Shown piece after piece: positions 2,278 to 44,131 of a DNA stretch of 64,000 nucleotides; position 1 is the stretch's first letter; each line of letters starts with the position of its first letter. The notes below the pieces were generated by a model. The model had not been told where the DNA came from and ran no database searches. It saw nothing but the letters and a program-made list of their open reading frames with translations. A program made the position numbers and the translations under genes. The DNA is taken from sequence record AP019418.1; one strand, 5' to 3'.

Positions 2278-3726
2278 ATGTCAGACGGTATGGTTTTATA
2301 CACTGACGGATCATTCCGACAGGGTAAAGCTGGTTGGGGTATTCATGGTTATACCTATGAAAATGTTGCAATGAAATCTAAAGCAGCCACCAAACAGCAA
2401 CCAACAGCTAAGGGATACTTAGATGTAGGTGCAGATGAGACATGCACTGTTTTAAATTATATTGATGCATTTGGTAGTGTAACTAATAACCCTACTAATA
2501 ATACAGGTGAGCTAACCGCTGCAATTGAGGCTTTCAAAATAGCTCATGAAGCAGATGCTCCTAGACTAACGATGCTCATGGATAGTGAATACGTTAGAAA
2601 AGGTATGACCGCATATTTACCCAAATGGATTAAGTCTAATTGGATTAAATCAGACGGCACGCCGGTAGCAAACCAGGACCTATGGAAACAGATGGTCGAA
2701 CTAAAAGCTAAATGGGAAGAAACTAATAAACCATTAAGCATCCAATGGGTCCGTGGACATAACGGAGACATTGGTAATGAAAAAGCTGATGCTAACGCTA
2801 AGCTTGGTTCGGGACAGAATAATGATAAGCCAGTGATGGTTTCGGTTAAAGGCGAGGAAATTAACAAACTTAAAAAACAAGTTGTTAATCCACTTATCCT
2901 CGAAAGTAGGTTACTCTTCGCCATTAACTCTGGAGAAGAACCAGATGGGTTCTATTACACCTATAACTTAGGTCGTATGCATAACTATGGTCATAAACCA
3001 AAAGACACTGCTAAAGATAAATTAGCTAAAGCTGATTTAATTTTAGGGCGTCGTATCTCTGAAGCAACCTTCAGTGTATATAAGGCAAATGAACCAGATG
3101 AGTATCTCCAGTTACTAATTAATATGCATACAGAAGCACTGGGTACTGAAAATCCAGAACTGGGTATCATCAATTTGGCAAACGCATATCGTGCAACCAT
3201 TCGACAGAAAATTGAATCCATGGGGCTACCTGCTCTAGTCGTATGGAAAGATATCAATGTTTTGTCGACGCCAACAGATGAACTCATTAGTCGGACTCTT
3301 AATCCACCACGTATGGCAAATGATGCTGTAGCTACATTTAATGTTATGCGCAGTCGTCTTGAAGATTACTTGGCTGGTAAACTTGGAGAGTCGGTTGGTA
3401 TTATTGATATTACCGAGCACTTCTTCGAGGAAGTCGCAAAGGGTAAGAAAGTTGGCTATCAACTACTTAAGACGATTACATCTAATACAGGCTTTGTAGA
3501 AGTTCCGATCACATTTAAAGATCGTAAGATAAAATTAAAGCTTGTATTAAATATCGATATTCCAAGTAGAAACCAATTAGCTCGTATTGGAGCTAATAAA
3601 GTTAAAATGGAAATTCTTGTAGTAGCTGAAGGCCCATATTCTTATTCATATTCAATTGTGTTCGTGACTGATGATGGTTCAGCTATTTATCAATCACCCT
3701 ATACACAATTTATTCTCCCAAAATAG
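2278..3726 (+). CDS. rnhA: Ribonuclease HI with long C-terminal extension (phiKZ gp155-like)
   Basis: RNase H motifs LYTDGS, NNTGELTA, MDSEYV and WVRGH..GNEKAD lie in the first ~190 aa. About 290 further residues are of unknown function. Confidence 0.9.
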   Translation: MSDGMVLYTDGSFRQGKAGWGIHGYTYENVAMKSKAATKQQPTAKGYLDVGADETCTVLNYIDAFGSVTNNPTNNTGELTAAIEAFKIAHEADAPRLTMLMDSEYVRKGMTAYLPKWIKSNWIKSDGTPVANQDLWKQMVELKAKWEETNKPLSIQWVRGHNGDIGNEKADANAKLGSGQNNDKPVMVSVKGEEINKLKKQVVNPLILESRLLFAINSGEEPDGFYYTYNLGRMHNYGHKPKDTAKDKLAKADLILGRRISEATFSVYKANEPDEYLQLLINMHTEALGTENPELGIINLANAYRATIRQKIESMGLPALVVWKDINVLSTPTDELISRTLNPPRMANDAVATFNVMRSRLEDYLAGKLGESVGIIDITEHFFEEVAKGKKVGYQLLKTITSNTGFVEVPITFKDRKIKLKLVLNIDIPSRNQLARIGANKVKMEILVVAEGPYSYSYSIVFVTDDGSAIYQSPYTQFILPK

Positions 3727-3736
3727 TGGGTATTCC

Positions 3737-4156
3737 ATGAACCTTATTAGCAGATTCAAAAAGTCGGTTAAGAATGGTTTCAGGGCAATTTGGATTAAGC
3801 TCTGGGACTATGCTGATCCCGAACTAAAGCGGATGTGCGTCATGGCGTCACTGTACTCCGTTATAGTACAGTGTAAGACAAATGAGTGTGAAAAGATCTC
3901 TCATTTGAATTCTAACATGAAACTAGTACGCGATGAAGCTGCCTTACGACTCCCTATTCATTATGGGCCGTACGTATGGAAAGGCGTGATAGCAATCGAT
4001 AAGATTGATAAAGCAGATCTAACCACTGATCAATTTTTCATGAGGCTTATTCGTAAGACTCCGTGTTGGATGAAATATGCTGATGATGCAACTTTTTTAA
4101 AGGATTTAAAAACCCTCTTTAAATTAAGTTTACATGAGAAGTGTATTCCAAATTGA
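3737..4156 (+). CDS. Hypothetical protein (gp154-like)
   Basis: Open frame after the RNase H stop. Likely start is ATG 3737 (MNLISRF); the track start at 3671 overlaps the upstream gene. Confidence 0.7.
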   Translation: MNLISRFKKSVKNGFRAIWIKLWDYADPELKRMCVMASLYSVIVQCKTNECEKISHLNSNMKLVRDEAALRLPIHYGPYVWKGVIAIDKIDKADLTTDQFFMRLIRKTPCWMKYADDATFLKDLKTLFKLSLHEKCIPN

Positions 4157-8133: not shown

Positions 8134-8640
8134 ATGAATAATCGCCAGATTTATGAAGATATGTGCGAAGCTTTAATTGTATCTAATACTGAGTTAGTAA
8201 ATGGATACAGTGCTGAAATCATTGCGGATATTTTGGATTTACTAAATAACTGGAGTACCAATACTCATTGGTATCACATTGCTGATAAAACAGTTATTAG
8301 GGATATCTGGAATTTATTCCGTAATAAAGGTAATCGTCTTCAACCTATCTTAAGTTTAGTTAGTCGATTTAAGATGGCTGTTAATGATTGGGATGGTGTG
8401 GTGAAATTACTAGCTGATTCTATTTATCCTTATCAGCCTAATTCAACTATTGTTGACCAAGAAATGTTAGCGCGATTAATTCCACGAAAAGAATTAACTG
8501 ACATTTTATACCAAAATGATTGGTTAGTTTGGATTATTTGCCAATGTTTAAATATCCGTTATATTACTAATATGGTTGAATCTATCCCAGTTCAAGCTAA
8601 GCCATCTAAAAAGAAGGCGGTAAATAATAATGTTTCGTAA
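8134..8640 (+). CDS. Hypothetical protein (gp148-like)
   Basis: 168 aa, tightly coupled to both neighbours. Confidence 0.75.
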   Translation: MNNRQIYEDMCEALIVSNTELVNGYSAEIIADILDLLNNWSTNTHWYHIADKTVIRDIWNLFRNKGNRLQPILSLVSRFKMAVNDWDGVVKLLADSIYPYQPNSTIVDQEMLARLIPRKELTDILYQNDWLVWIICQCLNIRYITNMVESIPVQAKPSKKKAVNNNVS

Positions 8641-9346
8641 AATCTTAATTGATCTTGACTCACTATTAGATACACGGTTAGGAACCATTAGGTTACTAAA
8701 TAAAGATGCAGCTAATAAGCTTGTTACCAATGGTCAAATTTACTGGCATAGGGAAATGGATGATTGGACTAAACTAACAGATGGTTTAGTAACTAATGAA
8801 CAATTTGTCGAAGCTTATTCTAAACGTGGTGGTGAAAATACTGCTGACACTATCAATAGTTCTATATTCACTGGTATCATTCCATTTATTATTCAATTAA
8901 TAGCCCAATCAGATTTGAATAGATTAGATGGTATAGTTAATGCTAATTTTGAAACATGTCTTGAAGTCAATATCTGGCCATATGAATTGACACCAGATGC
9001 TCAAGATGAATTACTATACTGCTTACATAAGTACATTGGTGATCATATTCAGATCACCCTGATTAATACTCCATTAACAGACCTTACTTGTTCTAGATTA
9101 AACTCTATCTATTCAATGGCGATTATGTATAATTTTGGAGAATGGTGTAAAACCCATGTTCTTGAATTAGGACAAGTGTTGATGCCTGACTTTACTATTA
9201 TTGGTCCAAAGCTATTTGAGAAAGATGTAAGTGAATTAGCTGTTGAAGATAAACAGTTTATTATCATGGATTTCCAGTTAAAGCATAAACTTAATATCGA
9301 CTTTGATTTCATCGATGCTGAATACTTTTCCATGTTTAAGCCATGA
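8630..9346 (+). CDS. Hypothetical protein, possible HAD-fold phosphatase
   Basis: N-terminal ILIDLDSLLDT resembles HAD motif I (DxD). The other HAD motifs were not identified. Confidence 0.6.
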   Translation: MFRKILIDLDSLLDTRLGTIRLLNKDAANKLVTNGQIYWHREMDDWTKLTDGLVTNEQFVEAYSKRGGENTADTINSSIFTGIIPFIIQLIAQSDLNRLDGIVNANFETCLEVNIWPYELTPDAQDELLYCLHKYIGDHIQITLINTPLTDLTCSRLNSIYSMAIMYNFGEWCKTHVLELGQVLMPDFTIIGPKLFEKDVSELAVEDKQFIIMDFQLKHKLNIDFDFIDAEYFSMFKP

Positions 9347-16178: not shown

Positions 16179-16712
16179 TTAACTTTCTAGATAACGGATT
16201 TGACCATTTTCTAGATAACGTGCTGCACCATTCTCTAATAGTCGGATAGTATCTGACGTATCATCAATACGTTGGATTAGTATATTACATTCACCATAGT
16301 AAGCATAGCTACTCGACATAGCTACTATCGTGTATGGAACAACATCCGTAGTTGCATTGATTGGTGTTGTATCAAATGAAACATCATCTGGACCAAGCTT
16401 CCAACCTCGTGAACGGTTAATTTCTTCAGCAATTGCTTTAGGTGTTAAAGTACCAACTATCTTAAGGATAGATCCTTCACCAATAGCACGTGGATCAGCA
16501 AAATCTAACCGACGGTAAGTTAACATGTACTTAATGTCAGTAGTGATGTCGATCATTTCAATAAATGTACGTCCAGGCTCAATCGTGGTTGGACTAAAAA
16601 ACATATCTTCAAATGTAACTGTTTCTGGTTTGAAGTTTATTTTTAAATCATCCCGCGCAAGTTTTACTAGCGCATTCCTCGATGCCATGTCATACGGAAA
16701 GATATCCTGCAT
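16179..16712 (-). CDS. Probable virion structural protein with YRRLDF domain and C-terminal RxLENG repeats
   Basis: 177 aa. Ends IRLLENGAARYLENGQIRYLES; domain resembles the ORFs at 34256 and 35137. Confidence 0.75.
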   Translation of the reverse strand: MQDIFPYDMASRNALVKLARDDLKINFKPETVTFEDMFFSPTTIEPGRTFIEMIDITTDIKYMLTYRRLDFADPRAIGEGSILKIVGTLTPKAIAEEINRSRGWKLGPDDVSFDTTPINATTDVVPYTIVAMSSSYAYYGECNILIQRIDDTSDTIRLLENGAARYLENGQIRYLES

Positions 16713-41771: not shown

Positions 41772-41802
41772 CATAAAGCCCTCCCCGAAGGGAGGGCCTA
41801 TG
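41772..41802 (-). terminator. Terminator of the major capsid transcript
   Basis: GCCCTCCC-CGAA-GGGAGGGC located just after the TAA of the in-frame extension, about 90 nt past the UGA. Confidence 0.85.
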
Positions 41803-41806
41803 TCTG

Positions 41807-41887
41807 TTACTCTTCTAACTTCCGGGCATTACCGTCTTCCAAATAACGGATAGTCCCATTTTCTAGATAACGGTAACCCTTTCCAGC
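41807..41887 (-). other. Putative readthrough extension of the major capsid protein (26 aa)
   Basis: In frame after TGA (41888-41890): AGKGYRYLENGTIRYLEDGNARKLEE-TAA. No start codon; contains a 21-bp hairpin. Confidence 0.7.
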
Positions 41888-44131
41888 TCACGGCTTAAGA
41901 TCAGCAAGCTTACCGTTGAACTGAGTTTCGCCCATGACTTTCTGGAAGCCAGTGATCTTGAACTCTAGCGCGAACGGAATGTTGTTGACGTGTAGGTTGA
42001 ACGGAATGGCCGCGATTTCGCGAGTAACCTGGTGACCACCACGAGTGATCGGTAGGTCAGCGATAACAGTAGATACGTAGAAGAACTGGCCCCAGGAGAG
42101 GATGTCGTTTTCTTGTTGTACTGCGCGGGTCGGAATTACAACTAGCTTACCATCAAATAGCTGGTTGTTGGTGGAAACGATATCGTACTTGAGATAAGCA
42201 CCTAGAGTACGGTCGTCACCTTTAGTCATTAGATAGTTAGCAATCTCTTTGTCGGAGCAGAAGAGATACATCGGAGTTTCATCCTGGTTACCGGAGATAA
42301 CACGGAAGGCAGCTTCAATGTTGGAATCACGGTGAGCCGGGAATAGCTCAGCTTTAACACAGTTTAGGATCGCAGCGCAAACGTCGTCCCAACGATCTTT
42401 AGACTTGATGGTGTCGATGACTTTCTCAAGATCTAGTTCTTTGTAACGATAGGTCGGACGCATTACAGCGGATAGTGCACCTTCGATGATACCAAACTTC
42501 GGACGGTTGTAACCATTGTGTACAACTTCACGTAGTTGAGCAAGGTAGTTAAGCATGCGCTTAACAGCGTTGTTGCTGTTACGGATGTTGGTGTTAACAG
42601 TTAGAGCTTTAACAACCTCACCCGGACCTTCATCGGTCATGGTGTCCATCGGTAGAGTTACAGGAGCGTGCATCGGGATCGGATGACGGAACTGTAGTGC
42701 ACGGGTCTGTAGTAGGTGACCACGCTGACGACGGTTAGTGTTGGTGAAGCGAGTATCTAGTTCGAAACCGATAACAGCTAGGTCAGTTAGCTGATCTAGA
42801 ATAGCTTTAACAGCCGGGTCAGCATTATCCATTACCTGGCCATCTTCGTTTAGAACTTTATCGACGTAAGTGTCGGTAGCACCAAACTTAGAATCGCCTT
42901 TGGATAGGCTGATAGTACCACCAAAACCAACGCTTAGACGTAGGCTTAGTTTAGCAGTCTTAAGGTCGTTAATAACGCCATCAGCTGAACCGTCGATGAA
43001 AGTGGTATCGCCACTAACAACAAGGTCATCGCTATCGAAACGGATAACTGCGTTCCGGGTATCACCAACTAGATCGGGCTGGAACACAGCGCGAGGTAGA
43101 CGGTCAACCTTGAACTTAACAACTTTACCGCCGAGTAGAACGAATAGGTTCTTTAGACGACCAGCCGGATCAATGGTGTCAGAAACTTCAAGCATGCCAC
43201 GCTGAATGAGTAGGTTAGCATTGGAGTTACCCATTAGATCAAGACGTACGTTCGCTTTTAGCGGAGCAGTAGTGATAGTTAGGTTCTGCTCGTTCTTGAT
43301 GGTGTACGGAGGAACAAGAGCCGGGTCTACGAAGAAGTCAGCATTGGAACCAGCCGGATCTAGGGCAGGAATTAGTGCAATGCTTTCGTCGTCGAGGATG
43401 GAAGGATCACGATAGGCTTCTACCATGTTCACTTCTTCGTTATCCATCTTAACGCCGGATACTTCGTGGTAAACGTCTTTCATTACAGCGATGTAAGGAA
43501 GAACCTGAACAACACCACCTTCAATCGGGTTGATAACGGTGGTCGGATAGATACGCTCAGCGAATTCATCCTGACGGCTAGCAGCTAGGTTATAACCAAT
43601 AGTTACAACACGGAAATCACGCTGTGACTTCTCGTTATAGTTCTCTAGGCCAACACCATTTTCGAATACTTGAATGCCACCAGCAGGGCCATTGAACTGA
43701 TGCTGTACAACCTTAACATGATCTTCATTAGAAGCTTTAGCTTTGGTAATACCACGTAGTGCACGGATATATTTAGTTTCATCAGCACAGGCGATAGCAG
43801 CCATGGTAGCAGCAGTGATTTGGTTCTCACGGACACGTTCTTCACGAGCACGTACTTGAGGATCACTGGAACTTACTCGTTCGAAACCATAGTCGTTAAC
43901 GAGCATTTGCATTTTGTTATAAATTGCAGCGGCATCTTGAATGTCGGTAGCTTGCACGGTACCGAAGTTTTCATGTGAAATGCTGCTAATAAGGGAACGA
44001 CCTTGACTAACAACGCTGTCATTTAGACCAATTTCACTTTCTAGGCGGCCAATGAAATCTTCCATTGAGAAGACTTCGTAATTCTTTTCGCCTTTGTGTT
44101 TAAACAGTTCTCTTAGGGCATGTACGCTCAT
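41888..44131 (-). CDS. gp120: Major capsid protein (phiKZ gp120)
   Basis: 747 aa. GVGLE163|NYNEK matches the known maturation site; strong high-expression codon bias; AGGA RBS. Confidence 0.95.
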   Translation of the reverse strand: MSVHALRELFKHKGEKNYEVFSMEDFIGRLESEIGLNDSVVSQGRSLISSISHENFGTVQATDIQDAAAIYNKMQMLVNDYGFERVSSSDPQVRAREERVRENQITAATMAAIACADETKYIRALRGITKAKASNEDHVKVVQHQFNGPAGGIQVFENGVGLENYNEKSQRDFRVVTIGYNLAASRQDEFAERIYPTTVINPIEGGVVQVLPYIAVMKDVYHEVSGVKMDNEEVNMVEAYRDPSILDDESIALIPALDPAGSNADFFVDPALVPPYTIKNEQNLTITTAPLKANVRLDLMGNSNANLLIQRGMLEVSDTIDPAGRLKNLFVLLGGKVVKFKVDRLPRAVFQPDLVGDTRNAVIRFDSDDLVVSGDTTFIDGSADGVINDLKTAKLSLRLSVGFGGTISLSKGDSKFGATDTYVDKVLNEDGQVMDNADPAVKAILDQLTDLAVIGFELDTRFTNTNRRQRGHLLQTRALQFRHPIPMHAPVTLPMDTMTDEGPGEVVKALTVNTNIRNSNNAVKRMLNYLAQLREVVHNGYNRPKFGIIEGALSAVMRPTYRYKELDLEKVIDTIKSKDRWDDVCAAILNCVKAELFPAHRDSNIEAAFRVISGNQDETPMYLFCSDKEIANYLMTKGDDRTLGAYLKYDIVSTNNQLFDGKLVVIPTRAVQQENDILSWGQFFYVSTVIADLPITRGGHQVTREIAAIPFNLHVNNIPFALEFKITGFQKVMGETQFNGKLADLKP

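Follow-up and report, generated by a model that had tools for sequence, protein, structure and literature searches.

Recoding allows several viruses to make two forms of a capsid protein from one gene. In the single-stranded RNA coliphage Q-beta, the major coat gene ends in UGA, the frame remains open behind this codon, and decoding of the UGA by a host near-cognate tRNA produces the minority isoform A1, which is built into the virion. In luteoviruses and poleroviruses, readthrough of the coat-gene stop codon gives the coat protein-readthrough domain product (CP-RTD), which forms a minor part of the capsid, stands out from the shell and mediates interactions. T7 (10A/10B), T3, A2, A118, A500 and PSA also possess two capsid isoforms per gene, the minor of which is extended at the C-terminus; the capsid extensions known from tailed phages are made by frameshifting, are exposed on the surface, and are immunoglobulin (Ig)-like in T3 and Lactobacillus phage A2 (PMC5009743). 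Here we analyzed a stretch of 64,000 nucleotides from sequence record AP019418.1 (the window), in which the gene of the phiKZ major capsid protein gp120 is followed, in frame behind its UGA stop codon, by an open extension of 26 codons. Comparison of the sequence with that of relatives makes it highly probable that low-level programmed readthrough of this UGA yields a minority extended capsid isoform.

Among known systems, the arrangement is close to that of Q-beta A1, since in both cases a UGA ends the major coat gene, the extension is in frame and a minority isoform results, which is predicted in phiKZ and virion-built in Q-beta. The predicted phiKZ form also shares with T7 10B and its counterparts in T3, A2, A118, A500 and PSA the C-terminal extension of a minor isoform encoded by the same gene. 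However, T7 10B, T3, A2 and the Listeria phages A118, A500 and PSA depend on a -1 or +1 slippery site, whereas the phiKZ extension lies in frame 0 behind the stop codon and needs no frameshift. The CP-RTD proteins resemble the predicted phiKZ isoform in that readthrough of a coat-gene stop codon gives a minor component, but they belong to eukaryotic plant RNA viruses and differ in their UAG stop codon, their long-range RNA stimulators and the large domain that is added.

The 3' end of the phiKZ capsid gene

A 901-nt query around the site was 100% identical to positions 119899-120799 of phiKZ (AF399011/NC_004629), with the window in reverse complement, and had at least 99% identity to 47 phiKZ-like genomes. 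The features of this region are listed below; the repeat-containing part of the extension is referred to as the tag.

41888..44131, minus strand: coding sequence for gp120, the major capsid protein, 747 amino acids, TGA stop codon included in the coordinates; identical to the PDB 8y6v chain
41888..41890, minus strand: first stop codon, UGA, putatively leaky, flanked as CCG UGA G, with Pro as the last residue and G at position +4; TGA is invariant in tag-bearing relatives
41810..41887, minus strand: frame-0 extension of 26 codons, AGKGYRYLENGTIRYLEDGNARKLEE; frame 0 is open from the TGA and under purifying selection
41810..41872, minus strand: tag proper at the C-terminal end, RYLENGTI-RYLEDGNA-RKLEE, 21 residues with the repeat architecture (RxxExGxx)2-RxxE
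41807..41809, minus strand: second stop codon, TAA, the end of the predicted extended isoform; varies among relatives (TAA, TGA, TAG)
41776..41799, minus strand: intrinsic terminator, a GC-rich hairpin of 10 bp followed by a T-rich tail, 3' of the second stop codon and not of the UGA; recognized from the sequence and from stem covariation in relatives

The gp120 protein terminates in ...GKLADLKP, followed by TGA at 41890-41888 (minus strand), and the DNA of the extension (41887-41810, minus strand) reads GCT GGA AAG GGT TAC CGT TAT CTA GAA AAT GGG ACT ATC CGT TAT TTG GAA GAC GGT AAT GCC CGG AAG TTA GAA GAG and is closed by the TAA. The terminator hairpin is located 3' of the second stop codon, and the transcript would therefore end past the second stop codon and not past the UGA. 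The original prediction had described this order of a capsid UGA, a 26-codon in-frame extension to TAA and a terminator after it, and the minus-strand sequence bears it out. It had also stated that the segment has no start codon, which holds for in-frame ATG and GTG, both absent from the phiKZ extension, but not without reservation: codon 16 is a TTG, although one that lacks a Shine-Dalgarno sequence and that the relatives do not conserve, and an out-of-frame GTG overlapping the gp120 stop codon (ccGTGAgc) begins an open reading frame (ORF) of 20 amino acids at 41829..41891. TGA is a minority stop codon in the window (43 TAA, 9 TGA and 7 TAG among 59 long ORFs). Two other long ORFs of the window, at 8630-9346 and 3671-4156 (both plus strand), also end in TGA, behind which the frame stays open for 59 and 41 codons, respectively.

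A Pfam search with the 26-residue peptide gave no match, and the extension is not annotated in the GenBank and RefSeq records of phiKZ. In keeping with the earlier statement that it is not known to have been described for gp120, the searchable literature contained no description of it, nor of translational readthrough in phiKZ, its relatives or any jumbo phage; the mentions of readthrough that we read concerned transcription.

Tag and stop codon in relatives

We gathered the 3' ends of capsid genes from IMG/VR, JGI metagenomes and GenBank phages, and from contigs with capsid homologues found in a large protein collection. The capsid tree comprised 41 taxa or loci from related phages and metagenomes; the unique loci bearing the tag numbered 24. 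In all of these 24 loci the capsid gene ended in TGA and was followed by a related in-frame peptide, and in every tag-less relative of the group it ended in TAA, so that tag state and stop codon agreed in 41 of 41 loci. Each of the two characters changed six times on the capsid tree, always jointly, and the independent contrasts were concordant (5/5 when well supported, 6/6 when all branches were counted). The tag-bearing loci, the capsids of which have 56-69% identity to gp120, include phiPA3, 201phi2-1, Phabio, Psa21, Noxifer, HPP-Temi and Viktualia together with metagenomic relatives; the arrangement spans several genera, namely Phikzvirus, Phabiovirus, Noxifervirus, Pawinskivirus (HPP-Temi) and the lineages of phiPA3, 201phi2-1 and Psa21.

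The first and the second stop codon behaved differently on this tree. Among 21 tag-bearing lineages the first stop codon did not change at all, whereas the second changed at least seven times among TAA, TGA and TAG. Moreover, in locus L048, which is nested among tag-bearing phages, a deletion of 60 nt removed the tag and the TGA had become TAA (L048:3700-3780). The capsid genes of distant jumbo phages ended in TAA in seven of eight cases. The capsid gene of Burkholderia phage FLC9 ends in TGA, which is followed by an open frame of 18 codons unrelated to the tag (L069:1251-1310).

The tag peptide is 24-30 codons long and follows the consensus x-G-K-G-x-x-R-[YR]-[LY]-E-[DN]-G-T-x-R-Y-x-E-[DS]-G-x-x-R-R-(Y)-L-E. 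In none of the 119 capsid protein clusters from a collection of 5.8 billion proteins was it fused to the capsid protein through a sense codon, which indicates that the tag is never produced constitutively and that the UGA is not a recent nonsense mutation. The original prediction had asked whether a UGA with an open, purifying-selected frame is conserved in Phikzvirus capsid-gene 3' regions; the alignment answers this positively for capsids down to about 56% identity, and neither a sense codon at the UGA nor a stop codon or frame-breaking indel in the segment, either of which would have told against the prediction, was found in the relatives.

Capsids of a sister clade (P0113, P0121, P0128, P0129, P0161-P0166) have constitutive C-terminal tails instead of the readthrough tag, consisting of 15-35 residues of Thr/Gly/Asp-rich low-complexity sequence. 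The capsid homologues P0094-P0096 and P0098 are labelled 'virulence-associated protein VapD' by JGI; because they belong to PF25620 (PhiKZ_MCP), this label looks like a misannotation.

Coding evidence for the extension

Frame 0 of the extension was open in all 24 unique loci despite a variation in length of 24-30 codons, and the two shifted frames contained stop codons in nearly all loci. In a codon model applied to the same alignment, omega was 0.35 in frame 0 versus 0.84 and 2.3 in the shifted frames. When omega was fixed at 1, the log-likelihood fell from -1365.1 to -1392.7, a cost of 27.6 (twice the difference = 55, one degree of freedom, p estimated at about 1e-13). The indels of the extension comprised whole codons, the invariant Arg residues were kept across switches between CGN and AGR codons, and synonymous sites diverged freely while the amino acids stayed the same. 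Across relatives the extension contained no conserved in-frame start codon (ATG, GTG or TTG) and no Shine-Dalgarno sequence. An open frame 0 under purifying selection, with neither a conserved start codon nor a sense-codon fusion, is hard to explain without UGA readthrough and a selected peptide. A frameshift of the T7 10B type was rejected, as the conserved peptide lies in frame 0 right after the stop codon and the -1 and +1 frames are closed.

The extension could also be expressed as a separate small gene, either through reinitiation after termination or with a non-canonical start codon of frame 0 or of the GTG frame, which would yield a free peptide of 20-26 amino acids. In line with such a gene, the phiKZ GTG that overlaps the TGA opens a 20-residue ORF, TTGA or ATGA stands at this point in many relatives, locus L024 has an ATG 6 nt past its TGA, and automatic annotation calls small ORFs here in HPP-Temi and Viktualia. 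However, the overlapping frame, including that of the phiKZ GTG ORF, is interrupted by stop codons in most relatives, within a few codons, and with the omega values given above the shifted frames show no purifying selection; frame 0 in turn lacks a conserved ATG, GTG or TTG and a Shine-Dalgarno sequence. Furthermore, a free peptide would not demand a TGA upstream, yet TGA and tag went together at every locus of the tree. We regard a separate gene as very unlikely. The 'hypothetical protein' ORFs placed over the extension in the GenBank records of HPP-Temi (L041:1454-1597) and Viktualia (L042:1478-1576) do not follow the conserved frame; these annotations are spurious and out of frame.

An untranslated 3' region could also be kept as an RNA or DNA element, serving mRNA stability, the terminator or recombination, with the frame and the motif being incidental. 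A stable predicted fold just upstream of the conserved terminator and of a CTTTATG motif agrees with this explanation. The divergence pattern does not: amino acids are kept while synonymous sites change, Arg codons switching between CGN and AGR included, omega is significantly below 1 in frame 0 only, and the frame stays open in 24 of 24 loci at lengths of 24-30 codons. In addition, a genuine protein family, gp143 (described below), contains this peptide module, and an untranslated element offers no reason for the co-variation of TGA and TAA with the tag. An untranslated element is thus a highly improbable explanation.

Decoding of the UGA

If the capsid UGA is read through, most ribosomes would stop there and release the 747-residue gp120, and a minority would decode the UGA by means of a near-cognate tRNA of the host, according to general knowledge of bacteria most likely tRNA-Trp, and translate 26 further codons to the TAA, which would give a capsid isoform about 3 kDa larger. 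Misreading of UGA by tRNA-Trp is the default route of readthrough in bacteria. None of the seven phiKZ tRNAs (Thr-UGU, Asn-GUU twice, Asp-GUC, Met-CAU, Pro-UGG and Leu-UAA) is an opal suppressor (anticodon UCA), and none of them lies in the window. A suppressor tRNA of the phage as decoder was therefore rejected, all seven being ordinary sense tRNAs, and decoding would have to use a host tRNA. One of the two tRNA-Asn(GUU) genes of phiKZ is unusually long, 87-89 nt (L061:39224-39310; phiKZ 269557-269645).

Termination at UGA in E. coli is weakened by a C-terminal Pro and by a +4 base other than U. Among the 24 loci, the +4 base was A in 16, G in 7, C in 1 and U in none, and the residue before the UGA was Pro in 10, Ala in 10, Gly in 3 and Val in 1. 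This context would be compatible with weak termination at the capsid UGA.

An RNA hairpin was predicted inside the phiKZ extension:

41824..41879, minus strand: predicted RNA hairpin, beginning 11 nt downstream of the UGA; compared with dinucleotide shuffles, z = -4.5

Hairpins were predicted 9-12 nt after the UGA in each extension, and 19 of 19 z-scores against dinucleotide shuffles were negative. The codons of the R..E-D-G motif (CGU...GAC GG) are self-complementary, so the hairpin is largely a by-product of the peptide. It may aid readthrough as a stimulator, but the recoding test does not support selection on the hairpin itself; an RNA structure selected in its own right was rejected, for the shuffle signal vanished under synonymous-codon randomisation.

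The same hairpin bears on a further explanation, in which the UGA is read as selenocysteine (Sec), a hairpin like the selenocysteine insertion sequence (SECIS) recruiting host SelB and tRNA-Sec so that Sec is placed at the junction. Pseudomonas hosts possess the Sec machinery, and the hairpins predicted 9-12 nt after the UGA, with their negative z-scores, speak for this explanation. However, an Rfam search of the region, SECIS included, found no family at any threshold, and the apical loops vary among relatives, in which a 5-bp CCGUC/GACGG helix alone is common; these two observations make Sec insertion unlikely. The folding is moreover accounted for by the codons of the peptide. In no relative does Cys stand at the UGA position, unlike the usual selenoprotein families; the tag-less relatives end in TAA, and the linker position has no obvious need for Sec. 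Taken together, we give Sec insertion only a marginal chance.

The terminator follows the second stop codon in all relatives, with a covarying stem. Directly 3' of its hairpin, the sequence CTTTATG (41772-41778, minus strand; L009-L042) is conserved in nearly all relatives and may be part of the terminator tail or the start signal of the next gene, gp121.

The same module in the lysis regulator gp143

A second copy of the repeat module is encoded elsewhere in the window:

16179..16712, minus strand: gp143, 177 amino acids, lysis regulator with the same C-terminal module; identified by sequence motif and homologue alignment
16182..16244, minus strand: C-terminal tag of gp143, RLLENGAA-RYLENGQI-RYLES, collinear with the capsid extension in the repeat alignment

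The C-terminus of the 177-residue ORF is IRLLENGAARYLENGQIRYLES. An exact identity of 17 nt, CGTTATCTAGAAAATGG, is shared between 16204-16220 (gp143) and 41856-41872 (capsid extension); with up to three mismatches this 17-mer has three matches in the window versus 0.15 expected, and no shuffle reached three. The capsid extension and the gp143 module are collinear over 2.5 repeats, and in both the stop codon follows one or two residues past the last RxxE. The resemblance in peptide and DNA that the original prediction had noticed is thus real and goes deeper than had been noticed, as both copies have the same 2.5 repeats and both stand at the extreme C-terminus. The repeat pattern of the capsid extension was seen in 23 relatives, and in 32 gp143 homologues (down to 33% identity) R157, E160, R165, E168 and R173 were invariant, the C-terminal module being the most conserved part of the gp143 family.

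The gp143 protein, which is cytoplasmic and non-essential, regulates lysis by acting on the holin gp142 (PMC12894885; TnSeq preprint). Its orthologues in Phabio, Noxifer and PA1C bear the annotation of virion structural proteins. In an AlphaFold2 model of gp143 (pLDDT 90), the tag forms three strands of three residues centred on the three arginines. The body of the protein resembles the baseplate outer-periphery protein gp127 (PDB 9xqd_0, Foldseek E 9e-7); a sequence search of gp143 against PDB gave no match, a phage 'Triplex 2' protein (9gb2) gave a weak profile match, and Pfam DUF7941 is matched by distant members of the family. The candidate gp139 was rejected as a gp143 paralogue, as it belongs to the unrelated DUF7208.

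The two copies are alike in the identical (RxxExGxx)2-RxxE architecture with invariant R, E and G positions, followed directly by a stop codon, and in the 17-nt identity within phiKZ. They differ in that the gp143 module is a constitutive part of a 177-residue cytoplasmic protein with a gp127-like fold and is also present where the capsid is tag-less. From its presence there, the module is of greater age in gp143, and the phiKZ clade appears to have copied it behind the capsid stop codon.

A larger extension in a sister clade

In locus L024, a metagenomic relative, the frame continues past the capsid TGA for 203 amino acids that contain a Pfam Big_2 Ig-like domain (E 4e-9; L024:4754-5370). This extension lacks a proper Shine-Dalgarno sequence, and its end comes before the terminator. 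The ATG 6 nt after the TGA makes it possible that the L024 extension is produced by reinitiation. In the nearest relatives of L024 the capsid gene ends in TAA with nothing downstream. The domain recalls the Ig-like capsid extensions of other phages, which are made there by frameshifting (PMC5009743).

Weighing the evidence for readthrough

A decaying, functionless remnant of a former C-terminal domain left by a nonsense mutation, which would agree with the repeated loss of the tag without loss of the phage lineage, is scarcely credible, as a TGA stands in every tag-bearing lineage across deep divergence without a sense-codon relative in 119 clusters, the segment is under purifying selection, and decay in L048 took the form of a deletion with the stop codon becoming TAA.

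Several observations weigh against readthrough of the capsid UGA or against its importance. The sign test on the contrasts gave p = 0.06 (five pairs) or 0.03 (six pairs), its power being limited by the few events. At least four independent losses of the tag (L048, L050/L082, L081 and L083) show it to be dispensable in some lineages. Tag-bearing gp143 orthologues occur on contigs L026 and L031, the capsid genes of which end in TAA without a tag, so that the capsid tag is not an obligatory partner of the gp143 module. The folding analysis revealed no dedicated stimulatory RNA element: the stability of the hairpin is about that of synonymous recodings of the same peptides (mean z -0.44), and the alignment folded into the 5-bp helix as its one conserved helix, plus the terminator. 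The model of the phiKZ capsid at 3.5 A stops at residue 747 (PMC11297242; PDB 8y6v). Finally, tryptic peptides of the extension are reported in no searchable paper, and no ribosome-profiling study of phiKZ was found in the literature.

Against these points stand the co-variation of UGA and tag in 41 of 41 loci and the purifying selection in frame 0, which support the readthrough of gp120 that the original prediction had proposed, and we consider low-level programmed readthrough at the phiKZ major capsid gene very likely on these comparative grounds.

Predicted position of the tag on the capsid

The C-terminal arms of gp120 (residues 728-747) come together at the hexamer centre in a six-helix bundle, which has a 9-A pore, and at the pentons the arm moves outward and binds the outer protein gp244 (PMC11297242). 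Because the gp120 C-termini lie at the hexamer centres and point outward at the pentons, a tag attached to them would emerge at the centres of the capsomers. From this geometry of the arm, the tag is probably placed at the capsomer centres on the outer face in substoichiometric amounts. T4 Hoc offers a likeness, as it is an accessory module at the hexamer centre, where the gp120 C-termini converge, and the Ig-like Big_2 domain of L024 is found in the position of the tag. However, Hoc comes from a gene of its own and attaches once assembly is over, and the phiKZ tag is a 21-residue repeat peptide and not an Ig fold.

On the capsid, the tag would present to a partner the same binding module as gp143. 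It is conceivable, although we think it unlikely, that the capsid and gp143 tags both represent a single docking signal that addresses the same partner, and that tagged capsids, as their number grows, compete with or recruit gp143 and so couple the time of holin triggering to head assembly; the older module would be that of gp143, and its copy behind a leaky stop codon in the phiKZ clade would give a few tagged subunits per capsid.

Implications

Among nucleus-forming jumbo phages, phiKZ serves as the reference; its capsid is resolved at 3.5 A and its proteome has been mapped repeatedly, and a second capsid isoform appears to have been overlooked. What is new here is the predicted UGA readthrough of the major capsid gene of a double-stranded DNA jumbo phage, with a short repeat tag common to a lysis regulator. 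If confirmed, it would provide a clear example of a double-stranded DNA tailed phage that uses programmed UGA readthrough. The extended form should then enter annotation pipelines, proteomic search databases and capsid models. The UGA site would also be a natural, evolution-tested position for low-copy display on the capsid of a therapeutic-candidate phage, comparable to T7 10B. The common tag would tie the capsid and the lysis regulator of these phages to a common partner, which can be sought.

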